A stretch of 64,000 bases of DNA from Phallusia mammillata (Eukaryota), in the NCBI GenBank assembly GCA_965637545.1, contig OZ281498.1, positions 17,050,001-17,114,000 of the forward strand. Reading direction: 5' to 3'. The notes beneath the pieces are model-generated. The model worked only from the letters and a program-made list of their open reading frames with translations. It ran no database searches and was not told the origin of the DNA. This document shows positions 7,600 through 37,183 of this stretch, piece by piece. The translations under genes were made by a program, and so were the position numbers. How positions within the stretch are numbered: position 1 is the first letter of the stretch; each line of letters begins with the position of its first letter.

Positions 7600-10500
7600 G
7601 GTTACACGCAGCAAGGTATTTGTTATCCTGTTTTTGCGTTAACCTACAGTCTACAAAAAGATAAAAATGGAATTAATTTTAGAAACGTACATTGATTACG
7701 AAATATTACGGAATATATCGGTCTGGGCGTGTGACGCAAACATTATTTAAACACAATGATGGGAAATATATGTAATTAACTTGTCCTAGATCAAATCAAA
7801 AGTAGCAATTTTACATCCGATTACGCCTGGTTACGAGCAACTAATGATATCCTTCAAAGGCAAAAATTAAGAGGAGGTTTAAAATCGGGAGCTGTTCAGG
7901 TCATTGCTCACAATCATATGTGCAGAACAATAAGGGATGGTCAGTTGCCAAGCTTTGGAACGGAGATGGGCGCGCCCTGGTAGCGTCACAAGCCAAATTT
8001 GTACCTACACTGCTGCGCAAGTAATAAACGCAACTGCAGCAGAGCCAAAAATTGCGACTCGGGTAATATGACGCCCATTTGGCCTCACAATCGCAGTTTG
8101 AATGGCCGCACTTTGGACCTCAACAAGGTGCTTGGGCAACGCAGGGAGACACAGCGTGGGCGCAAGCGGCTACAAGCTCGTCGCGTCAGTTATATGACCA
8201 AACAAACAATCTTACGGCCGTCGCCACTGCTGCACCTAGATAAACAAACACCGTCCAGCCGTGTAATGCGTGTATTTAGATTTATCGCAGGGCAAACCAC
8301 AAACATCTGTGGTGCACAACTCTGTCCAGTTTGATGGCACGTTATCGCCCATTTCAGGGACTTGAAAGCTTAACTGTAGACTTTCATGCTGCCGCAAAAA
8401 CACTTTCAAGGTAGTATCTGCTGAAAAATCTTAAAAACTTAAGACCACACATCACCTACGCGTTCTTGGAATTTTCTCACTCCTTGGCCACGCCAAACCC
8501 ACAATCATCGCACTCCAAACAGGACAAAACCTGCAGTGCGCAACAATGTACATTGTACTCAAACAATCACCCACGGAGAGAAAGCTTATTTGGTTTCGGC
8601 TTAAAATTGCTCAAGTGCGCATGACCAAGAAGTCTTTTTTGTGGTTTTTCGTCGCTCCTAAACGGAGTAAAAGATGATATTCGTGTAAACAGCGAATTGG
8701 CAATGTGTACCAAGCATTTCAGACCGCCATCACCCAGTTGTGTGCGGGGAAATTTGAAAGTTGTAGTTACAGCAAAGTTCGTCAGTTAACCAACAGTTTA
8801 CTTCTATTCGGTGACTTGGGATTTGGTACATAATATATGCTACTTCACACTAAGCACCATGATTAAGTCTATCTATTATCCATCTTTGTCACATCGATAG
8901 CACAAAGAGATCGCATGCAAATCAACAACAAAGACAACAACCTACAAAAAACGTATGTAACTAAAACTTGCCATGACTTTCGGTATAGCAACTGCCTTAA
9001 ACCTATTTGACAGCTCAACAAACCTAACTGAAATGACAATTTAAATGGGGTTACTCGGGAACCCTAGCAATAAGTCAGGCCTCCCTTGACCTTAATTCAA
9101 CCGAAACCCCGTTCTGAAGTTAAAGGGAAACTTTCAAAGGCGCTCGTCTACAACGCGTTTCCTGAAATTCGCTGAGTTTTAGGAGCATTCACTACTCTAC
9201 GCCATGCGAATTATAGTCGAACCATGGGGGCCCACGACAGCGTTTGCCTACTTCTTTCACTCTGTGTGCTGTTGCTGTGTAAGCGGTGTGGGAGGCACGC
9301 TGGGTCGTTAGCGCTAGGAGCGGTAAGCTTCACCGGCGATCATGCATTTTTGGTGGCTTCGTGAGAGAATGGCTTCAACGCCAAATACTTGCGGCAAAGA
9401 TCCATTATCATTCTTTTGCAAGCCCATTTATATCTTTCCAGTTAACTACGCAATTCTAGAATAGTCACGGCTCTTACCGACATAAAAAAACGCTTTATGT
9501 GGTCTTATAACAACCAAAATTACAGCATTCCTATATAGATCCACCTGTTTTGTCTTGTTGCATGTAGTTGAATGGGCATCAAAAAACTGGCAAACGACAG
9601 ACCTTAATAGTCGTGCAGTCAACAAGGGCCCGTGTGAACATAGTTGACATATCACATTTTCGCTTGCTTTACTGTTTAGACAAACTCAAGGACAAGGACA
9701 CCAAGTTGGTCAAACACGCCGATAAAATGTTCGCTAGCATTTGATCAGACGTACAAGTGGAAGCACCGCAAAGTCATGTCATAAACCATCATCAAACATG
9801 TTACGCGTGAGAAATACACAAAAAGATAAAGTCGCGCTTCACAACCTTAACTTAAACCTGATAAATAAATAAAGTACATCGTACCTGACACCTTTCCTGC
9901 TTTAGTGGTACGCCCTCAGTGCCTGTTAACTAGACCGCGGATAGATCATTAAACGAAGTCACCCTTTTTTGTCTAATTATGCACTTGAGTTGAAAGTTTT
10001 AGCCAAGGGGCGTCGACCGCGTCCACTTAAACTGACGGTGGTACTTAGTTTGCTAATTTAATGTTGAATCTGCCATAACTCCACGTTTCAACAAGTATTC
10101 TGACACGGAATAAGCCGTGAGAAAAGTGGATTCAAGTGCTTTCCTGACCAACTTCCTGGCCATTAAACTCAAAACTACCACTGAACACAACGGTCAGACC
10201 CAGGCGAACACACATCGTACATCGCCGTTGACAAACGTTTTGGCGGGATTTGGTGCTTGAGTCTCCCGCGAAATCTCTTGTGTTTTCACATTGTGAAAAC
10301 CATTCTACTGCCAGGCAAGGCAGAAAGATCAGCAAAAAATGCGCCATATCGCGCTATTTAACTTGCTCTTTTTTCGTCGGCGTTACAGCTGCTTGTGTAA
10401 ATACGACTACACGTTCAATGGAATGCTGCGACGGTTTCCTGGCGCACTACATCACACTGACGTAACAAACGATTGGAGCAAGGCCTGGGAGCACGGACTT

Positions 10501-12529
10501 TGAATCAAGCTCTTGGGACGTGACCCGTTAACTTCAAGTCAATTCGAAAAATGTTGACGATTTTTACATTTTCTTGTACCGTAACGCAAATGGCATGTAG
10601 AACAGACACGTTTAGACCACCGGCACACACATCTCTCCACACAAAAGTCATAGGATTTTCATCGCACCACCAACGATGTTTAACACAAAACACACTTTTA
10701 GGTATGCACGATTTAACTCTTTATTGCATCACACAGCCGTGAATTGGGACGCTTGCAGTGGCGACCTTTTCAACCTTCACAAGTTTTCCAAAACCCAAAC
10801 GAGTAGTCATGCCACGCGTATAAGTGTGTGGCAGGCTACGCACTATCGCAACGGAACTACAAGAAGATAAGAACGGAAGCATTACCAAATTATGGGCGCT
10901 TGAGCTACAAACAGAGTCTAACTTGCCGCCATTGTGTATACATTCCTCTTATGATTAATTGCTTTTCCATAACTGCCGGTGGTGCCTCTTCGTAAAGCTA
11001 ACGTGCGGCAAAAAGCCAGAATATTGAACTTGTTTTGAGGCATAAGCCAAAGTTTTGAACTTATTTTCGTTCAACTTTTAAATGGTAATACTTTTTTGTA
11101 TTTTGCTTTACATGGGCTACTTTTGTTGCTATCATACACAGCTGTCTGTACAATATCTTTGTTTAAATTAGACTCTGGTATGTATAAAAATTTCCAACTC
11201 CTGCAAATTATTACCTTTCTATCCTGAGCCATTTCCAGGAAAGGTTGTTTTAACCGTCACAGTTCCAGGAAAATATTCAACTTATTTTGTTTAAAATTAC
11301 TGACCATTGACCAATTTTGCAGGAATTAAAAAGTTGCTGCACTTCAAATGTATCTCGTGCATTTGGCGTCATCCACTAGAACTACTTTGTCTACTATGAT
11401 ATCAGTCATTAATTTTATTCCACGCGTACTGTTACGTCACAGTGCTTTTCTTTTGTTGCCATGCTTAAAGTTGATCCTTCGCTCCCAAAGGCATGGACTT
11501 ATTTAGACCTCATGTTCCTGAGGGATTTCAAGCATCGGGCATTGACTGAGCTTTGGACTATGCAACCTATAATCAATTTAAATCTATTCACCGTGCAGTT
11601 TAACAACATCAAAAGTCTTGTAGAGCGTCAGCAGTAACCTAGCCTTGTGCCAGAAAGCCAGCTTTTTAGTCTTGCAGCGTCGGTTGTCAAGGGAGTTGAC
11701 ACTATAGGTAAGGGTGTGCTGCAATTGCTGTTTGTTTACTAATTGAAGACCTAGGCGTTGTGGGCATTGGCAAATATTCATTTGTTATGGTAAAAAACCT
11801 CTCATCCTGCCTTGCAAATACAAGGGGAGTGTTTATGTAAAGACTATAAACAAAGCCATTGGGTTGTAATTCAACAAGAAGCCTATTGGTTGGATTAAGT
11901 TAATGATATTGTTTTCTTACTGGGTACATCAGCACTAATAGCACCCTTACCCCTTCTTTAACTGCAACAAATTGGCTTCTAAAGTTGTCAAATCGGGCAT
12001 CATATGCAATCAAGACCAAGCAGCCTGTCTTCCCTCCACAAAACAAAGATAAGTTTTACTGAAAGATAGTGATAAATTAGTCTACAAATGAGAAGCTTAC
12101 ACTCGATTTTTTCTGGCGCCCCATGTTTGTTTTTTTTTCTTTGGGAAACCCAAAATTGTAAATCGTGATTGACATTTACCCGCTTGTTTACACAAAGTGG
12201 TTCCTGGGAAGCACTAGGTGCCATGGGCTTCGGAAGTCCAAGTCACACAGAGCGCATAGTTACCATTCTTTTCTCGCACTGCGATCTACTAGGAGTTGTC
12301 TAATGCAACACAGGGCAGGTGCCGATATATAACTCAAGCTTCCTTCGTTGGTGTTGAATGAAATTTGGCAACACTATCCGAATCAGGGGAGGCAGTAAAA
12401 GCAAACTCCGGCTTCCACAAAATAAACAACGTCGTGTTCGGGGCCTTACTGCAAGGAAACCGATCTTCTGCAGAACTGGTGGACATATGACGTGCTCAGA
12501 GTAACAAATCCCTAGGTTGTACGCTAAAG

Positions 12530-12851
12530 CAGTGGTTCCCAACCCGGGAGGAATTCCTCCCTAGGGAGGAATTTTATGAGTTCAGGGGAGGAATTTCATA
12601 AAAACTGTAAAAAAAATTACATTGGAAATGTTACAGAATATTTTTGTATCTACATTATTATGTCAATTACAATTTGGACCCGGTTCGCATTTGGAACCAG
12701 TTGTAAAGGATTCTGAAATGGACAATTATAAGGTCTGTTTCAAATTGCTATAATTTTTTCTGTTATATTTGCTTTTCTTCTTATGGGGAGGAATGAATAC
12801 TACGAAAATGGGCAAAGGGAGGAATGTAACAAAAAAAGTTGGGAACCACTG
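12530..12851. mobile_element. hAT (Charlie/Buster-type) MITE
   Basis: 14-bp TIR CAGTGGTTCCCAAC/GTTGGGAACCACTG; perfect TSD CGCTAAAG; five subterminal GGAGGAAT motifs. Confidence 0.9.
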
Positions 12852-14695
12852 CGCTAAAGGTTAAATATAAACTGAAACAACAAGATTAATGCAAACGCTG
12901 GGCATATATACATGTAAAATGTGGGATATGTCACCGAAAAACTATGCACAAATTGACACAAAGAACTGAACCTAGTTGGGAACTCTGTAATAAACAGTAA
13001 ATGTTAGGAACTCCTAAACAACTCAACACCACACTTGCTCAAACATTTGGGAAAGGTAAGGTAATATTGTGAAAGAACAGTTGTGGCGAAGACGGTCATT
13101 TTGTTGCAAAATTGCCACTTCAGTGCGTTCATTTTTCAGTCGTTCAATTGAGACTCATGGAGTATAGATATTAAATTACATGTGGTCCAATTTGTCACGG
13201 TAAAAGGAAAACTGCAACACAGTATTGGCTTAAAGGCGTCACACTTGCCATGCGAACTTTCCGGCATGCCAGCAGCAGTCCATCGTTTATCCAATTACGA
13301 TGTTGTGCCAAGACGTTTGGTTTCAGGCAGACATAGGGCCGCGTTGTTTCTGGATACATGGTGATTAAGCGGGTAGGAGGCAGCGAAAACTGGCAAACGC
13401 TAATTACCACGCTTCTCCGGTTTCATCGCTGCAAGGGGTTAGTGCATTGGTTTGGCGAACCGCAGAACACGATAAGGCACATCTATTCTCGAGTTTGGTT
13501 TCGGCGTGGTAGGTCTGCCTTGCGTTACACGAACCCCCTTCTAGCTGACTTGTAAACCTCTTGACCTGCAGCCGTTGGAAAAAACTTTCGCCTTTGACTG
13601 GCGTGCGTGACAGAATAACTCGAAACCTTGAGAAAGTTGCACCGTGGTAATATTGTAAAGTCAGTTAGGTTCACACCATGGTTACTACCTTTGTGGGAAC
13701 TAAATAGTTTGGAAAAAGTCACCTTTAACTGCACGCCTATAAATGGAGTCAACACAGAATTTTATGACTTTGGCGTCATACTACGAACTTGTGCTAATAG
13801 ATCGTATTAGTCAAGACACAACAGTACATCATTGCTTACATTGAAAAACAACGCCATTCGTTGAAATCAGGCACTTCCGCACCACCAAAAAATCCATCCC
13901 TTCGTGGCTGTACTGGACTAAATATATTTTCATAATTTATCAAAATCAGTGCCGTTTATCAAAATGAATGGCAAAACAGTTCAAAATTCACTGATGTGTA
14001 GTTATTGGCAGTCAGAACGCAAAGAAAATAAAAAGCTAGTGATCGTTAACAGGTATGCGATTTGACACTGTAGATAACAGATGCTGAAATTCTTGTAGCT
14101 TGTCTGTTGTTTCAAAAAAATACAAAGCGCCGTCATCACTTTAACTCAAACGTAACACATTATTGCTGCGTTGCTTGAGAACGATATTTTGGTTTCAGCA
14201 CCTTTAGTAGACATCAACAATTTAAGTTTAGGAGAATAGTCGCAATTACGTCACAACCTTAAGCAAGGGTTGATGTGAAGAGAATCGGTACGCAGCTGGT
14301 TTGGGCGGTCAATAATGATATTTAAAACAGAGACTTGGCGGGTTTGGGAAAAGTTTTACTGTTTTTAACACCGAACATTTATTTCTTAAGCTTTACAATC
14401 TTAGCTCGGAGGTCTTTTGTATTTATTGAAAAAGCACACCAAATCAAAAAGTGTTTATTTTTGGACAAAACCTAAAACGCCAGTTTTTGAGTTTTTAAAC
14501 ATCCAAAACTGCCTAAAAAATGCAAGCACAAGAAAAAGGTTTAGTAAGATTTCGAAAATCGAATACAGCAGATCATGTATGGTCAATAATGGTGTTTTCA
14601 GGGAGTTTAGGAATTCTTATTTCGAAATTCCCTATACAAAGCGTCTTTTAGGCAGTGGAAAAACAAAAAAAACAGCTGATGTAGGGGCAACCGAG

Positions 14696-20577
<5,882 letters not shown>

Positions 20578-26352: not shown

Positions 26353-29300
26353 ATGACGAAATACGTCAATTGCGTTCTGATTCTCTTTCTTGTGGCTATT
26401 AATTGCAACAATTGTGACAAAATCAACAGTAAGTTTAACCATGTTTTCTTGATATATTGGTTGAAAGGTTTCAAATATATTACTGTCCAAATTGTCATCA
26501 AAATTTTTTTTCGAAATTTTATTGTTTTAAACAGTTACTGAACCCATTTTTTACTTTGGACCAGGTTGCTTTATACTATAAATTTTGTCCAAAGCAACCA
26601 CACAAAGAAAAAACTTGCCTTTCAAAACTGTCTAATGTTAAAAGTGTCGTTTACATGAGAAATAATAATTATTACAATCAAAATTTAGTCTTTGTCGACG
26701 TTAAGTTGTTTGTGAACAGTAGCAACGAACCAACAGTTAATAAATACGCTTTTCCTTTTAGCAAGCCTAAACCTAACACAAATATAAACACGTCAAACTG
26801 AAAATATGACATTTATAAAATAGGCACGACAACCAATTAATAAAAACGTACAGTTAAGTATAAAAATATTCGTAATGAATAAAATTATCAAAAGAAATAA
26901 TCACAAAAGAATGTGATATTAGAGCAGCGGTTCTCTGGGGTCCGTGAGACAATTTGGAGGGGAGCGCGAAGAGGTTGAAGTAATTCTATAATCTTACTTT
27001 GCGTCAGTTTGTGACACTACAAAAGTTCAAATCAAAGTAGAATTGATAATCGACTGTCTCCATTGCTGAACAATAGCCTTTACTGGATAACAACTAACAA
27101 AAATGCAATTGTTAGCGCACAATGGTAATGATTTTGTCCAGTCTGTTATATCACGTGCTGTCTTTTCGAAATTTTGCACAACCGGCTAAAATCCTACAAT
27201 CAACTTTCGTTTTTCTGAAATATACATTCAGGCTTAACGACCGCTAGCCCTTGAAATAGTGGCAAAGGGACAGTTTTAAAAATATAATGAAAAAGTTGGA
27301 CAACCACTGTATAAAAGGTGTGTATTTGTAAATTATAAAAATGTATAATCTCACAAAACGTATCGTGCTTTGCTGAGTAGGTCTACATGTTTTTCTGAAT
27401 GACAGTTGCTTTACACGTGCAAACCACTTAAAAACGCACCAAACATCGCATTGATTCAATATCTCATAATCCTATTTCCTTTTACTCAACGAAAATTATC
27501 ACGCACTATTAGTTTCATTGGGAAGCGACAATTATTAACATTCGGATGCGATTAATTCAAGTGTTGGAATTAAACACGTACATATGTCCCTGAATGTCAA
27601 GGACTGTTAGGGTTAAAACCATACAGGAAATCTTAAGCATAAAAATGTGTACACACATGTTGTGTATTTAAACCTCATCATAAAAGATTTTTTTTTTTCA
27701 GCTGTCAATCAATTCCTGGTGACGATATCAGGTTCGAATCTTACAGCAAGTGAAGTTTTAACAAAGTTAAAGCAACTTTTAACGTCGTTAAAAGGAAAAG
27801 CATCGGGTAAGCGAAAGTATTTTTAACGAACGTTTTCGTTTCAATTACTTCACATACGCAAGCTTGCCTAGAATACATGGATTCAGTATTTTTTTTAAAA
27901 ACTAGTGAAAACTAATTAAGATTAACAGTCTGATTGTGCAACTAACAATCGCATTAAAGACTGGCTACCGTACATAATCATGCAAGTCCCAACATTAATG
28001 GGGGATCATTTCTGAAGTCATTATGCTCATCAATTACGACTAAATGTATCTTTTTTATGCAAACATATGTAATAATTATTAAAAAAAAATTGGTGAGGTG
28101 GTTGCAACGATAGCCTGTTGGAAAATAAAATAACAGTGACATATAAACGCACACAAATATGTAATTTAACAATGTTTTCAGTTATGCATGTTGTAAACTT
28201 GTTGTCGAGAAAGTGATAACGTATATTTAACATCACTTCGTGTCTTGCAGACATCGACGAATGTCGCCTTATTCTGGACATCTGCAACAAGAATGCGACT
28301 TGCATAAACACTTTGGGATCTTACAAGTGTGCGTGTGACGAGGGACACGCAAAGAATGGCAACATGTCTGACCCCTGTTCGGGTGAGATGTATTATTGTG
28401 TTATACTGTACTTGATGAGGAAGTCTTAATAAATTTAGGTGCAATCGAGGGCTAACCTCTTTGCCGTAGTAAACAGTCCAAAGTCCGTTTTGAAAGTATG
28501 ACTGTTAATCTACAATTACACAAATACAAAACCAAGGTGCCAATTCTTCTCTATATAAATTCCTGAGTTGTGTTTCACAATATACCCTGTTATTTACGGT
28601 GCCGTATACATGTCTCTACATCAGTGGTTCTCAAACTTTTAAAACACCAATTTTTTGTAGAAAAGAAATTTGTAAAAATGGTGGGGAAAATCGAATTTTT
28701 GACAAATGAGCAAAATCAGCTTTTAAACATGGCCACACGCGTCTGCGTTTCGCCATCAAGCTCTATAACACCAGAGTATGTTTGAATTTTAAAATTGCCG
28801 ATATTTCGCGACACACTTCGAAATCTCGCTCGATGCACTAGTGAAGATTACTGCTTTACATGCTGAAAAGCGGTTTCGGTCAATAAGCATGTATCAAAGA
28901 AAATGTATTTTATTTAGCCTGCAGCTCGGGGAAACTTACTTAAAAAAAGGGGTGGTGGTCCAGTGACATTCGCGTCTAAATTAATGATATCATTTTTACG
29001 GCAGATATTGACGAATGCAAAGTTGGAAGCCACAATTGCAGCGAGCATAGCACTTGTACAAATTTTCCTGGTTCTTTCTCTTGCATGTGTAACGAAGGAT
29101 TTACTGGTGACGGATATGTATGCACTGGTAAGTGAATTAGGGATAATTACTGCCATTAAGTTCGTTGTGAAGAAAACATGCAATTTTAAACAAGTAGTGA
29201 ATATATCTTGGTTTATTTTGAAGGTCTGCAATATTTGGGTAAAGGTATATGATGTAACAACAGTTTAGTCTGTTTTTCTGCTAAAACACATTATTTTTAA

Positions 29301-32300
29301 TTTGCTCTTATAAAACTTCACGTTGGAAAAAACTATGAAAAGAAGATTTAGCCTGTGAAAAAAAAGGTTTAACCCTTTAGGCTAAATTTTTGTTTATTTA
29401 TTTCTTCACAGATGTCGATGAGTGTCTAAACGCTACCATCAGTGATTGCCTGCCTAACTCGTCTTGCCTTAACCTACCTGGAACATTTGTTTGCAATTGT
29501 AATGTAGGTTTCACGGAAATTGACATGACTTGCAATGGTGGGTTTTTTATCAATATGTTGTCTAGAAAAACCTATCAGAAAATGACGAAACGAGAAATAG
29601 AAATTGACTAAAATGCTTTTGTTTGCTACACTTTGACAGATGTCGACGAATGTACTTCTGGCGCTCACAAATGCAGTAACTACAGCAGCTGTGCTAACGT
29701 GATAGGCTCATACCAATGCTCTTGCAACGACGGTTTTACTGGAGATGGCTTCAGTTGCAAAGGTATACATGAACTACCAACCTCTTGTGCAAAGTCTTGT
29801 GTAAAAGATTAGATTTTGTTTTGCAAGTTTTTCAAGTTTAGAGCTACAAATTGTCAAAACGACTTACGCATGGCCAGATGACTGTCATGAAACATATGGT
29901 GTCAGTTACTTAAGTCACCATGGATTTGTGTATCCAGTAGCAATCGAAAACGTTTTGCTTAGAAACGAGTTATTTAAACATTTGCTGGTGTCTCATGTGA
30001 ATATTTAACTAGAAAATGATCAACTGTACATTATTACTTTTTGTTTTACAATATTAACCATTGTGAAACAGATTTAAACGAATGTGAAACGAACCCGTGT
30101 CATAACAAGGCAACTTGCACAAACTTGTTGGGAACTTTCTCGTGTGAATGTGCATCAGGTTTTACTGGAAACGGAAGTTATTGTCAAGGTTGGTGTACAA
30201 TGGTTTTAGTGCAGCAAAGCTATTTGATTTGAATTTGGATAAGTAGCGCTTAATCTATTGTCCTTTCAACTAAAACCGAAGGCACGCCTTTATTGAACTC
30301 AGATTTTGATTTAGTTAGATGTTACAATTTTCTTTTTACCTGCGCAGACATAAACGAATGTATGACCAACAAAGCAAACATTTGTCATAAAAACGCAAAA
30401 TGCGAAAATCAGCCGGGCTCGTTTGTGTGTCGATGCGACGATGGCTACCATGGCAACGGATCCCAATGCCTAGGTATTTAAAAATCGTTTATTTAAAAAA
30501 ATACATGTATGTTTTTTCAATGAGTAAATGTAATAAGTTACTGATTTAAAATTTGAGAAAAAACGAATGTTAAACTGCAGCACTGCTGTGCACTGAAAAC
30601 GCTATACCTATTAAAGTATCAAAAAATTTCAATTGATTTTTTTCAGATGTTGACGAATGTCAACTTAACCAGCACAGCTGTAGTTCGAACAGTACATGTA
30701 CCAACCTACCTGGCTCATATAATTGTACATGTAATGTTGGATTTTCTGGCAATGGCATTTTCTGTGAAGGTATAGGGGACTTTTTAACTGTTTTAAATTT
30801 AAAGAAAGTTATGTATGCTATAAGTTATTTATCTGCTATATTTGTAACGTTTTTGTTTTGTTTTGTATAATCTACTTAGTAAACATCTTCGAAAATTTAA
30901 TTGGTCTTATTTCATTTTTAAGATATTGATGAATGCGATTTCAAATCCTGCCACCAAAATGCTGTTTGCTTTAACACTGGGGGAAGTTTTAAATGTGAAT
31001 GTTTGCAAGGGTTTTCCGGTGATGGACAAATGTGCCAAGGTACGAACTTTTTAACGTTTCAAGTTCTTAAAAAAAACCTTAACTATCATCACTGTAAAGT
31101 GGAAACAAAGGGGAAAGAGCTATATGGTAGGAAAAACACAAAACTTAAGCTAAAAAAAACTACTGCTTGAAAATTATCGACAATGCGCAAATGTGCCCGA
31201 TACGTTTTTTATCATCCTTAGGATCTTATTTGACCAGGCTATTTGATGTTTTTTTGCGAGTATTTCTCAAAAAATCGATCAGTATTTGTTAGTTACCGCA
31301 GCCGTCGCAAGGAGGATTACGAAACTTAAGTGGAATAGTTAGATTTACTATGTTGTTGAGCGCTGGATTTAAAGCAGTGCATGTCATAATAATCTCCTTT
31401 CGCATAAGAAGGTCATGCGTAAGATACCAGGGACGTTTACAGATCCGTGTTTTTTTTTTCTGATGATTTGTATGATGGGGTCAAATGGAGTTTGCAAACG
31501 GTGCGTTGTTTGCCACAATTGACTAATCAGGTATGAAAACAAGCCTATGCGCAGTATTTGATAACAATATACTCAAAGGAGATAAGTAATACATAATTGG
31601 GATTAACATTTCAGAATGTAGTTTTGTGTTTTCAGATGTCAATGAATGTAATACAAGTCCATGCCATTACAATGCAACTTGCACGAATTTTGTTGGTTCA
31701 TTTTTATGCGAATGCAACGAAGGTTTTGACGGAAACGGAACGCATTGTCAAGGTCAGTTACTACCGATAAATACAAATAAGAGGTTTAAAACATTCATTT
31801 AACCATAAAACAGTAGTTTTTATAAATCATTTAGACGAACGAAATTTGACATGACAGACGAATTGATTTGTGTTTTTACCTTAATATATTGAGACATTAA
31901 GAGCTTAATCATAAGTCAGATATTATGATTTCTAATCCGTTACGCATGACTGCGTTTCGACACACCAGTTGTCGTGTGTCTGCCAGATAAAAGGTCGCAA
32001 CATAAAATCCAAGTTGAGAGGTTTGGGATATCGATTTGTAGCTTTTATGATAATTGAAAACGACAAACAAAAGGAAAGATTTCATCTGGACCTCAATATC
32101 TTACGTCTTTACTTTAACTGAAACAATATGCTTTCTAATTATCACCTAATTTGACGTATGTGTCAAGAAATCAACATAATGGTCACATGTATTACGAATT
32201 TACTTTGACACATGTCATTGTTTCCTATAGTCTCCTATTTTTTAAGTTTAGTTGAATGTTTTTTGCAGATATTGACGAGTGTGAAACGAATCCGTGTGAC

Positions 32301-35300
32301 GATAACGCCACGTGTCGTAACGTAATTGGTTCGTTTTTATGTTACTGCTTTGATGGCTTCTCTGGCAATGGAACTCATTGTGCAGGTAGGATTTTCAAAC
32401 AACTGAACAATACGAGTTATGAGTGAACAGAAATATCGAAGTTCTCGTGTATCTGGTAGTTTAGAACAGGGGTCCGCAAATAGTGGGTCGCGACCCAAAT
32501 TTGGGTGGCGAGACCTTCCAGTCTGGGTCGCGAAATATTTTAAATTTCCCATGAATATAAGCATCGCATCTACAGCATTAATGAACTTCGGCTTTTCCAA
32601 CCTTATGATATGACTATGTAACTGTTACATACAGTCTATGTAACAATGTAATACTAATAAATTAAGCGCACCTGTGCAAGCATGCGGTTCTCATTTGTTA
32701 GAATAAATACGTTCGTTTACCTACTGTTTAATGTGAAAATATCAACTGACAATAGCATAATACTAGTCTTAATATTGTCATTTAGTTGTTTATTATTTTC
32801 CACAAACTTACATGCCAACAAAATGCTTATGTCGCGAGAATTTAGAGCAATTTTTTTAGGGTCGCGTCAGAAAGTATTTGCGGACCCCTGGTTTAGAACC
32901 ACGGTTACTGTTTTCATGTTTGCTTGATTACCGTGACAAACTCAATATGAGAAAATCCAAAAGTACCTTATTCTTTGCTGTCTCCCTACGTTTGCCGTTT
33001 TGCTTTGAAAAATAACAAATTTTACCAAAGAGCGCCGATGTATATCATTACAACCACTTTGTCTAATAACTTGCGATAAAACTGGCATTACTTCTTCACT
33101 TTCGTTCTTTACATTTACTTGTATGGGACGACCATTGCAAATAGAAAAAAATGTTTCTTTTTCAGACATCAATGAATGTTTGGAAAATCAGTTTCTATGT
33201 GAAGACAATGCAAAGTGTTTCAACACGTTGGGTTCCTACTCTTGTCAATGCCTATCGGGCTATGAGATGAAAAATGGATCTTGTCAAGGTGCGTAATTTT
33301 TCAAATTCGCAAATATAGCGAACACGCAATTTCATCAAATTACACCAGAAAACGTTTACAGATATCGACGAATGTGTTTTGGGCACAGCAACGTGTGACA
33401 CAAATACACAAGTGTGCGTCAACAACCAAGGGTCTTATGATTGTCAATGTCGGAAAAATCTGCGGTGGGATGGAAGCCAGTGTCGACAACGTAAGTTTTA
33501 TTGGTCGCTAAGAGGCGACAAGGAGCCAAATGTATACTGATTGAATATGTGACTATTTATAATCTGTGCCTTTAATAGTGCTGGTTTTGACTGTTTACAT
33601 CGATTTTTAAACATAATATTTTATTCAGCACCAAACGAGTGTGCGATGGGAACTCACGACTGCCACCCACTGGCAACTTGTATTCATGAAGGTCCAACAT
33701 ACTCTTGTGTGTGCAACGAAACTTCGTATGACAACAGCAGCAAAGGAAGAAACTGCGGTTAGTTGGAACAAAGCTGTTCGCCAATAACATACTTCGGAGC
33801 AAGCAGTCAAAAATTTAATTTGAAAATCATATTGCACAAATACTTGCACCTCGGATCTCTCGCGTCTACGTGATATTAGGGGCAATTAAAATTAAAACAT
33901 GCTGTTTCTTACGCAAGAAGTGCACGTTTGTGGCGCTTTTCAATAAAGTATGAAACTTGTGACATTAGGTTTAAATTTTTAGTTTCCCCGGTGAAAGTGA
34001 GTTGTACATCGAGAAGCATCTCGGTGGAAGTAGTTGCAGAATATTACAAGATGAAACACATCTTCTTACCCGATCTGCATCTCAATGACCGGAGCTGCGT
34101 CGGGGTAAAGTCATCTTCTTCGGGAAGTCACTGGATCTTTGAAATCGACGATCTTACATCCTGTGGAACAGTCGTGCGCGTACGTTTTGGATATAAAGCA
34201 AAATTTTAAAATATTCCTTTTTTTCATGTTTATATATATGTTTAACCAAATGTGGTTTATCACAGAGTTTTATTACTTATTTGGTTTGTTAATAAACAAA
34301 GTGTTTGTATCGCTTATGAAAGCAAACAAACATTTGTTTGAACGTTTTCATAATTTCCTGTAACATATAGAGTTCTAGACTTTTATAGCTCGATGGGCTT
34401 TCGATAAAGGTGCTTTTTTCTGCTTGAAAAAAGTAATTTCTCTGTTGAGTATACTGTATATTATGAGTGCTCTCTGCGTTTGTTTTTACCTTGGTTTCTG
34501 GCAATGTTTCTGAAAACCGTAGAAAGGTTTTCAGATATTTATCGCAAGAGTTTTAAATCTTTGTTGATGTATTCGCAGAAAAATCGTACCCACGTGACGT
34601 ACTCCAACGTGTTGTCTAATGCCGTGGATAGCGGAGTCTACCTGGGAACATTTGTCAGCGTTCCTTTCTCATGCTCATATCTAAGCAATCTTACCGTTGC
34701 TCTCCCAACACCATATGTGCCACAAACAAAGTAAGTTATATATTTGCCAAATATCATTCGTAGAAACCCTATACCACCGTGCTGTATTTTAATTATATTT
34801 TAAATACGCGTCTTACCCAGTTAACATTAGGCGTTTCCTCACATGCTAAAATAACAATTTCAAAAGGTCGATTGTAATGGATTAAAACATGTTGCGTTTA
34901 TGTGCTTTCACTAGTTTCCAAAATTAAAAACTTGAATGTCCAGACTATGAATGTCCAACTGAACAGTAGTTCCAAAAATTTGGACACCAGTTAAACTTTT
35001 CATTGCAGTGTAATCAGCATATCTGGACCCAATGGCACAGGAACATTTGTAGTTGAAATGCATCTTTACACTGACTCAAGCTACACGAAGATCAGCAACG
35101 AGACTGTGTACGCAACAACCGACACTCTATACGTCCAGGTTCGTAGTCAAATGAGTCATCATAATTTAAAAAATTAAAACTGGCTTTAAAGTTTGCAAAT
35201 TAACTTTAACATGATAAAGTAACTTGCTACCGATACTGCAGTTTTGATCCTAACTTCAATGACTATCGTTTCGTAACAGTTAAAAATATATGGTTTACAA

Positions 35301-37183
35301 TATTTATACTCTGAGTTGCTTCACAACTGTTTGAAATTTAATGTGACAAACAAACTGTTATCCTGTTATTGACCTGAAAAAAATGAAATGCAAGATAATA
35401 ATAATTTTGCCTCCCCAGGTGAAATTGACAGCTGATGATGAAAGATTAATTCTTCTTATTAATGAGTGTTGGGCGACTCCATCAAACAGTGGAAGTGATC
35501 CAAATGGTTACACGTTCATCGACGACGGGTATTGCATTTTGTAAAAGTTTTTTTTTAATATTCTATTCACCCTGAGCAGTATAGAAAATCATAAGTCCAC
35601 AGTTGCAACCATACACTTTACATTTAAAGCTCAATATTGTTTCCAAAGGCACATACTTTCCGATTTGTGTACAGTAGTAAACCCGAGTTAAATTGTTTTC
35701 AGATGTCCCATTCCTGGAAGAGTTGCCGACACTGTTCGGGTAAGTTAACCAAAATCACAGCAAACACAACATTTAAACATTTTACTTTGCCTGCTAGTGT
35801 TCCTTTGGACTATTTTCAAATACCACTTTATCAACTGTTATTCCAAAAAAAATTTACTGTTATTCCTAATTTTATAAAATTCGTTATGTATCATAGGTGA
35901 CATCAAACGGACAGGGAAAAACTGCACATTTCCAATCTCAAGTTTTTGGTTTTGTTGATTACAACACTACTTACCTTCACTGCACTGTAGACCTCTGTGC
36001 ACAACATCAAGGAGAGGATTGCCAAAGGGTACGTCGTTTATACCACACAAAAAAAACTCGTTTGTGTCATTGAAAAACAATATATCTATAGCAACGCTTC
36101 CCGTTTACAATTTAATAACCTGCAACAAATAGGTTTTTCGTATTGCTTGTTCGCACAGGTGTAATAATCAAACTTTCCACGTCCATTATAAAAGCGAGAA
36201 GTTGGGAGTAGTTTGTTACGCAAAGTAATTTAGGATTTAATATTCATGTAATTTCAGTCATATTGAAAACTACTGTATTAGTTGTTTTCAGTATAATGTG
36301 GCTTGATAGTGCTAAAGGTGCACCCTACTCGTATTAATCTTTCTGCATCAGACCTGTAGGTCTTCGGGCCAAGTTTGGGCTTGTGTTTTAAGAAAGCGGG
36401 CATGATTCGGGCCTGACTTTACATTCAAAATATTGTTTTCCGGGCTTGAATCGGGCTTTTTTAATTAGATTTGGATCGAATTTCCGGCTTGAACTTTCCG
36501 GTTCAGGCCGGGTCAACTCTGGTCTGCGTTATGGTTAATACCGAAATCAACTTGCACAAGTCAATATTACACAAAAAAGTTGACAATAAGTCACATAGAA
36601 GTAAATGGCACTCGGTGTTCAAAAGCTGTCGATGCTTAACATATGAACCCATTTCATTTGTGCTTGTATTCTTTGCCAGAGCTGTAACCGAAGTAGAAGG
36701 TCAGTGTTTTCTCAAAATCGTGAACGGCGCTCTGCTGATATTCAGTTTCTATCTCTTGGACCATTCATTTCGGGCAAAAGTAAGTTGCCGATTTTATCAA
36801 GTTGTTTCTCTTTACATTTTGATACGAATTTGGTATGGGTTTAAACACAAATTTTCATAACAGGAAGCACATTTGCAAATCACGTTGATGGATTCTTTTC
36901 ACGCCACTTTTCCACCATTATCAGTGCCTTTGTGTCTGCCGTCGTCCTGATGATATGTCTTGTTTTGTACGTTGTTGTAAGCGGACAACGACTGCAACTG
37001 CGAATTTTGCGGCGTTTCAGTGCTGAAAATGCGGCCAATAAGCACGATCGAGTTCGAAGCGGCAGCAACGCAACAGCTATCCGTAATCTTCACGCTGTCA
37101 TGGCGTCTGACGATGCGGCTGTCGGCAAATGTCACGAGCACGGAGCTGGTGGCACGTCATCCTTTGAGTGCAGTCGGGTGTGA
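26353..37183 (+). CDS. Type I membrane protein: signal peptide + 13 EGF (mostly calcium-binding) + ZP domain + furin sites + TM, about 986 aa (VC120/uromodulin-like layout)
   Basis: 23 exons: 26353-26428, 27702-27806; EGF exons 28251-28382, 29005-29127, 29412-29537, 29640-29762, 30072-30188, 30348-30473, 30647-30769, 30923-31039, 31636-31752, 32269-32385, 33166-33288, 33362-33490, 33629-33757; ZP exons 33983-34179, 34579-34730, 35009-35138, 35419-35528, 35703-35739, 35897-36028; then 36680-36779, 36864-37183 (2961 nt, in frame). D[IVL][DN]EC starts and CxNxxGS[YF]xC motifs; ZP hallmarks [41 protein letters not shown]; RSRR/RERR; EHP-like LSLGPFI; [23 protein letters not shown]. In-frame upstream ATG at 26311; AATAAA at 37714. 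Confidence 0.9.
26925..27309. mobile_element. hAT MITE (family B, copy 2, inverted and older)
   Basis: Aligns to the reverse complement of 24425-24843 over most of its length; degenerate TIRs; flanks TATTAGAG/TATAAAAG. Confidence 0.8.
28622..28853. mobile_element. Degenerate hAT MITE
   Basis: Left end CAGTGGTTCTCAAAC; right end decayed (GAAGATTACTG); flanks CTCTACAT/CTTTACAT (7/8). Confidence 0.6.
32467..32890. mobile_element. hAT (Charlie/Buster-type) MITE
   Basis: 16-bp perfect TIR CAGGGGTCCGCAAATA; perfect TSD GTTTAGAA; lies in the intron between EGF10 and EGF11. Confidence 0.9.

Follow-up and report, generated by a model that had tools for sequence, protein, structure and literature searches.

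Does the combination of 13 EGF modules, a ZP module, and a transmembrane (TM) helix make an ascidian gene the counterpart of VC120, the precursor of a sperm receptor in Halocynthia? This question is raised by a gene located at 26353–37183 on the + strand of a 64-kb window of the Phallusia mammillata contig OZ281498.1 (the window is the whole stretch analyzed, and all positions are its coordinates), whose 23 exons encode a protein of 986 residues. The earlier note had offered two readings of it, a candidate sperm receptor of the VC120 type and a uromodulin-like protein in which the count of 13 is coincidental. Judged from sequence comparison, the gene is the ortholog of Ciona intestinalis LOC100187424 and is not an ortholog of Halocynthia VC120, with which it shares the count of 13 by coincidence. 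It quite probably encodes a type I membrane glycoprotein precursor belonging to the uromodulin/GP2 branch of the ZP-module proteins, for which filament formation is predicted.

The Ciona ortholog, the EGF count, and the ZP module

Database searches were run exon by exon. A phmmer search with the 65-residue ZP-N exon against 1.84 billion representative sequences gave 11 matches, the best of which was a Ciona intestinalis fragment (UniRef F6S5F0, 58% identity). A word search with this fragment led to a full-length relative, the 802-residue XP_026694385 encoded by LOC100187424, which carries the automatic NCBI name "uromodulin isoform X2" (isoform X1 is XP_026694384). The 986-residue model aligned with XP_026694385 from end to end, and this alignment provides an independent validation of the hand-built 3′ half of the model. 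Identity was highest in the ZP module (68%) and the N-terminal segment (63%), lower in the EGFs that could be aligned (53%), and lowest in the tail (28%). The two genes share the exon and domain order, a 35-residue N-terminal segment, the first and last EGFs, a ZP module containing a mini-exon, a conserved hydrophobic patch, and the TM anchor. They differ in the furin site upstream of the patch, which is RPKR in LOC100187424 and RSRR/RERR here, in the diverged cytoplasmic tail, and in the number of EGFs (8 versus 13), the middle ones of which form no one-to-one pairs. A synteny comparison gave no match between the neighbors of the gene and those of the C. intestinalis locus.

At the C. intestinalis locus (GCA_018327825.2, AP043567.1) the exons follow in matching order and exactly 8 of them encode EGFs, which makes the count of 13 lineage-specific. 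Reciprocal best matches between the EGFs of the two species were limited to EGF1 (61%) and EGF13 (51%, to the last EGF of XP_026694385). EGF5, 9, and 10 (64%) and EGF2, 4, and 7 (54–56%) were closer to one another than to any C. intestinalis module, which is expected from duplications within the lineage of the 13-EGF gene. As a separate observation on this locus (10001–18168), the newest C. intestinalis annotation contains a 602-residue protein that stops exactly where the 37-nucleotide (nt) mini-exon should follow and calls the remainder a separate gene of 218 residues; the older 802-residue model includes the mini-exon.

The likeness to HrVC120, which is grouped here with HaVC80 of H. aurantium, lies in the signal peptide, EGF array, ZP module, and membrane anchor, together with a nominal total of 13 EGFs, the last of which is atypical in both proteins (PMC9265791, PMC4523013). 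This order of parts does not discriminate, since it is common to many ascidian ZP proteins. HrVC120 is specific to the gonad; cleavage at Arg668 by a trypsin-like protease of the follicle cells yields HrVC70, which comprises twelve full repeats and one incomplete repeat and is fucosylated at residues 143, 254, 362, 470, and 578, located in EGF-3, 5, 7, 9, and 11 (PMC9265791). The spacing of these residues indicates a repeat of ~54 residues, twelve of which occupy ~650 residues, whereas the modules found here are 39–44 residues long and EGF1–12 amount to 491 residues. HrVC70 has two lysines in total (PMC9265791), while EGF1–12 contain 15. HrVC70 is also highly polymorphic between individuals at restricted EGF sites; three substitutions were listed here among four RNA runs, whose assembled contigs hide minor alleles. 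Furthermore, the published Ciona ortholog of HrVC70 is CiVC57, composed of a von Willebrand factor (vWF) domain, 24 EGFs, a ZP module, and a TM helix (PMC7018956, PMC8849226). CiVC57 resembles the present protein in having an EGF array, a ZP module, and a TM helix (PMC8849226), but the vWF domain and the 24 EGFs are found neither in the gene examined here nor in XP_026694385. Pfam detected no vWF domain in XP_026694385, and in the gene examined here the RNA contigs leave only 283 nt 5′ of EGF1.

Taken together, the ortholog's count of 8, the repeat length, the lysines, and the architecture of CiVC57 indicate that the match in number is coincidental. The VC120-type sperm-receptor reading is hence not supported, and the count of 8 in C. 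intestinalis favors the other reading of the earlier note, as does the type of the ZP module described below. Apart from one ZP4 of herring and one Clavelina protein, word searches with the ZP module of the ortholog yielded Ciona entries only; they also missed uromodulin, so that their blank for HrVC120 is uninformative.

The ZP module of XP_026694385 was compared with all PDB sequences. It matched uromodulin (4.4e-33) and GP2 (2.9e-29) over ~225 residues, while TGFBR3 (3e-6) and the egg-coat proteins choriogenin H (8.5e-5) and ZP2 (1.8e-4) followed far behind. In the aligned part, which takes in the third and later cysteines of ZP-N, the linker, and ZP-C, the cysteines coincide with those of uromodulin. 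By these scores the ZP module is shown to be closer in sequence to uromodulin and GP2 than to the solved egg-coat proteins ZP2 and choriogenin H. The likeness to uromodulin and GP2 extends to the cleavage site followed by a hydrophobic patch and to the calcium-binding EGFs upstream. The differences are that those proteins have a D8C domain, a glycosylphosphatidylinositol (GPI) anchor, and 4 EGFs, whereas a TM helix with a tail and 13 EGFs are present here, and that the EGF adjoining ZP-N has no detectable sequence similarity to EGF IV of uromodulin.

Several observations weigh against placing the protein in the uromodulin/GP2 branch. The strong E-values come from the ortholog, while the gene's own second ZP-N exon and last ZP-C exon matched uromodulin and GP2 alone among PDB sequences, with marginal E-values of 1e-4 to 0.04. 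The first ZP-N exon and the stretch of EGF13 plus ZP-N gave no significant match to any PDB sequence; homology of EGF13 to uromodulin EGF IV is therefore not claimed. A D8C domain was not detected by Pfam in the exon pieces of the window or in XP_026694385, both of which gave EGF and ZP families only. A GPI signal was not found either, the anchor being a TM helix with a tail. The last two findings bear on the protein as an ortholog proper of uromodulin or GP2, so that we describe it as a uromodulin-type ZP protein rather than a uromodulin ortholog. Egg-coat ZPD proteins group with uromodulin, GP2, and the tectorins, close to Ciona sequences (PMC6262864); a uromodulin-type ZP module is thus compatible with an egg coat.

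Gene model, transcripts, and protein features

The window contains no N runs and has a G+C content of 33–44%. On the + strand, a six-frame scan for the cysteine pattern located 13 EGF modules within 28262–33756; the whole window has only three further matches. Every one of the 13 modules is encoded by a single phase 1-1 exon with a polypyrimidine-AG acceptor and a GT donor. The ZP exons downstream of EGF13 were chained by hand using splice sites and reading frames. In the resulting model the frame of 986 codons is open from the ATG at 26353 to the stop at 37181–37183, and all splice borders are canonical AG/GT. Pfam searches with exon pieces gave EGF_CA for EGF1 (4.4e-12), ZP-N (2.7e-7), and ZP-C for three pieces (1.7e-5, 2.4e-6, and 1.5e-7).

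The gene is real, transcribed, and spliced. Eleven public RNA runs of one organism hold parts of the gene stretch. The runs of studies P1, P2, and P4 contain 0.19–0.24 of the sampled words, approximately the amount expected from the exons alone; six runs of two other studies contained no sampled words of the gene stretch. Reads of four runs from three studies were mapped on 28240–34200, and these yielded spliced contigs of 3245, 3256, and 3378 nt together with a pair of 860 and 2647 nt. The contigs carry all 13 EGF exons, and the 12 inter-EGF introns and the joint of EGF13 with ZP-N are GT..AG introns located exactly at the modeled borders. No exon skipping was listed in the spliced contigs of the four runs. 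On the 3′ side, the contigs join 34179 to the start of the exon at 34579 and extend 1162 nt beyond 34179, as compared with 981 nt of modeled coding sequence. On the 5′ side, they reach 283 nt beyond EGF1, and their outermost 30 letters map uniquely to 27776–27805, which reveals an exon at 27702–27806.

These four runs differed at three listed positions over ~1.8 kb of coding sequence, namely by a synonymous substitution, T243S, and I448S; because the contigs drop minor alleles and a control gene was not included, this is weak evidence of low polymorphism. T243S (30113) changes the O-fucose consensus residue of EGF5 with the site kept, and I448S (32326) lies in EGF10. Three runs (X1, X2, and X4) also gave contigs, distinct from the spliced mRNA contig, that cover part of the EGF10–EGF11 intron (32618–33015) with a word depth reaching 15; they could represent a transcribed repeat or another transcript.

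The signal peptide, the 13 one-exon EGFs of phase 1-1, the ZP module, the furin sites, and the TM helix had all been recognized in the earlier note, and they are borne out by the scan, Pfam, the RNA contigs, and the ortholog. It missed the 105-nt exon revealed by the RNA contigs, and ZP-C also contains a 37-nt mini-exon. The first exon (26353–26428) contains the ATG and the signal peptide in 25 codons plus one base, ending in phase 1 at a GT donor. It was modeled on the basis of its phase, the 178 nt of contig remaining 5′ of exon 2, and the collinear structure of the C. intestinalis ortholog. Exon 2 (27702–27806, phase 1-1), defined by the RNA contig ends, encodes the 35-residue segment with one N-glycosylation sequon. 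No Pfam family matched this N-terminal segment. The segment (27704–27805) is better conserved against C. intestinalis (63%) than the EGFs (53%), and its sequon is kept.

The EGF exons follow from 28251. The exon of EGF1 (28251–28382), a calcium-binding EGF (cbEGF) of 44 residues, is joined to the next exon by a 28381/29004 joint seen in four runs, in addition to its EGF_CA match. The exons of EGF2 (29005–29127), EGF3 (29412–29537), EGF4 (29640–29762), EGF5 (30072–30188), EGF6 (30348–30473), EGF7 (30647–30769), EGF8 (30923–31039), EGF9 (31636–31752), EGF10 (32269–32385), EGF11 (33166–33288), and EGF12 (33362–33490) also encode cbEGFs and are each supported by the pattern scan, the splice borders, and the RNA contigs; EGF5 has 39 residues, and EGF9 shows 64% identity to both EGF5 and EGF10. 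The exon of EGF13 (33629–33757), supported by the pattern scan and the RNA contigs, encodes an atypical module that lacks the calcium-binding consensus and adjoins the ZP module.

The ZP module begins with the first ZP-N exon (33983–34179), which gave the Pfam ZP-N match and whose 33756/33982 joint was found in four runs. The second ZP-N exon with the interdomain linker (34579–34730), entered by the RNA contigs from 34179, is one of the two exons with PDB matches to uromodulin and GP2 only. ZP-C starts with two exons located by splice sites and collinear with the ortholog (35009–35138, Pfam ZP-C 1.7e-5, and 35419–35528, 2.4e-6). They are followed by the 37-nt mini-exon (35703–35739), which restores the frame and encodes a stretch nearly identical to one in XP_026694385, and by the fourth ZP-C exon (35897–36028, 1.5e-7), the other exon matching uromodulin and GP2 only. 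The furin-type sites RSRR and RERR and the external hydrophobic patch, which aligns with XP_026694385, are encoded at 36680–36779. The last exon (36864–37183), read from the sequence, contains the TM helix, the cytoplasmic tail of ~65 residues, and the stop.

The domain order of the protein is thus signal peptide, 35-residue segment, 13 EGFs, ZP-N/ZP-C, two furin sites, hydrophobic patch, TM helix, and tail. The earlier description of the repeats as compact cbEGFs was correct for 12 of the 13 modules. EGF1–12 are 39–44 residues long, start with D/N-x-D/N-E-C, and have the consensus for Asn/Asp β-hydroxylation, six cysteines, and one-residue linkers. Such modules, each encoded by one phase 1-1 exon, are also found in the arrays of fibrillin and Notch type; the array described here differs in being joined to a ZP module and a membrane anchor, without TB or other interspersed domains. 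The O-fucose consensus C2-X4-5-S/T-C3 is present in 9 of the 13 EGFs, and the protein contains 26 N-glycosylation sequons. RSRR is located at residue 851 and RERR at 861, both ahead of the hydrophobic patch. A hydrophobic segment of 26 residues (896–921) precedes the tail, which begins with basic residues.

Predicted assembly and alternative readings

The cleavage and polymerization steps proposed here are modeled on what is established for ZP proteins, uromodulin among them. After the precursor has reached the cell surface, a furin-type protease would cut it between ZP-C and the membrane anchor, at RSRR/RERR. Such cleavage is expected to free the blocking external hydrophobic patch, upon which the ZP modules may polymerize head to tail into extracellular filaments. 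From each filament subunit, the 12 tandem cbEGFs and the non-calcium EGF13 would project as a rod measuring a few tens of nanometers, stiffened by calcium and heavily glycosylated, with one-residue linkers between the cbEGFs as in fibrillin. This EGF rod is the putative ligand-presenting part. Duplication of symmetric phase 1-1 exons presumably lengthens the array and their loss shortens it, so that C. intestinalis has 8 modules and the present gene 13, whereas EGF1, EGF13, the N-terminal segment of 35 residues, and the ZP module remain constant.

As the tissue of the putative filament, a somatic or larval matrix is favored, at slightly better than even, over an egg coat, which keeps a minor share. 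LOC100187424 was not found in a Ciona larval proteome supplement. A "uromodulin" unigene is mentioned in a 2017 study of C. savignyi embryos (PMC5612238); this may be RNA study P2.

The alternative that survives best, possible though not probable, is that the protein is a vitelline-coat component, one of several oocyte EGF-ZP proteins that would serve coat building or sperm binding without being the VC120 ortholog. EGF-rich ZP proteins are numerous in ascidian egg coats; the Ciona proteome contains 11, and Halocynthia has HrVLP-1 and HrVLP-2 (PMC9265791, PMC8849226, PMC3543715). Several HrVC120-related Ciona genes are reported to be oocyte-expressed (PMC4523013, citing Kurn 2007), and the position of egg-coat ZPD proteins within the uromodulin/GP2 cluster (PMC6262864) is compatible with such a role. 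Expression of the gene is restricted, as it was present in runs of three studies and absent from six runs of two others. The O-fucose consensus in 9 of 13 EGFs also fits, since fucosyl glycoproteins of the Ciona coat bind the sperm fucosidase (PMC9265791); against this, the consensus was read by eye in only about 3 of the 8 EGFs of XP_026694385. High polymorphism is described for HrVC70 and for the ZP proteins of Ciona oocytes, but few differences were observed among individuals here, and a literature search with the LOC100187424 accessions found no paper naming the ortholog.

It is unlikely that the protein is a non-polymerizing membrane receptor or co-receptor, comparable to endoglin and betaglycan with their ZP modules. 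Such a function would suit a true TM helix with a cytoplasmic tail of ~65 residues in place of a GPI anchor, and a weak ZP-C match to TGFBR3 was obtained. However, the furin-type sites followed by a hydrophobic patch conserved in both species represent the arrangement of polymerizing ZP proteins, the match to uromodulin (4.4e-33) is far stronger than that to TGFBR3 (3e-6), and the tail is poorly conserved (28%).

A shade more doubtful still is a specific form of the coat function, in which the protein would be one of the fucosylated high-molecular-weight glycoproteins that sperm α-L-fucosidase binds in the vitelline coat of Ciona type. The O-fucose-rich EGF rod would then be the sperm-binding surface, and gain and loss of EGF exons might aid species-specific binding. 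Least probable is a counterpart of Halocynthia VC120, a precursor whose cleavage would free a polymorphic EGF array to act in self/non-self recognition as the sperm receptor: the matching domain order, the total of 13, and the atypical last module are outweighed by the 8 EGFs of the ortholog, the compact lysine-richer modules, the vWF and 24 EGFs of the named Ciona ortholog CiVC57, and the listing of only one synonymous and two non-synonymous substitutions among the four runs.

Related sequences and significance

Further relatives of the gene, described here as a uromodulin-type ZP protein, were detected in metagenome contigs, with at least 4 EGFs in one contig and a single one, over the 4.5 kb preceding ZP-N, in another. 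The relative found at L002:4591–14767 and L003:1218–11394 has ZP exons of 40–70% identity and an animal source, and probably comes from a tunicate. Its one visible EGF in the 4.5 kb before ZP-N is EGF13-like, which recalls the one-EGF architecture of HrVLP-2. Within the window, a tandem duplication with two neighboring ZP genes was rejected, as tblastn of the ZP module found nothing at 39–58 kb. Upstream, an open segment on the − strand (15242–15589) matched Pfam CytochromB561_N (2.9e-7), and a TMEM209-like gene is probably located there on the opposite strand.

These results remove a tempting link to the ascidian self/non-self sperm receptor. In its place stands a clean, RNA-supported gene model that includes the exon for the 35-residue segment and a mini-exon of 37 nt. 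It is well supported that this is an ordinary gene for a uromodulin-type EGF-ZP membrane protein, whose ortholog LOC100187424 is uncharacterized. The gene offers an example of how an EGF array may change in length by exon duplication between two sea squirts (13 versus 8) while the putatively polymerizing ZP core is fixed. If expressed in the oocyte, it would be a candidate coat component that differs in length between species.

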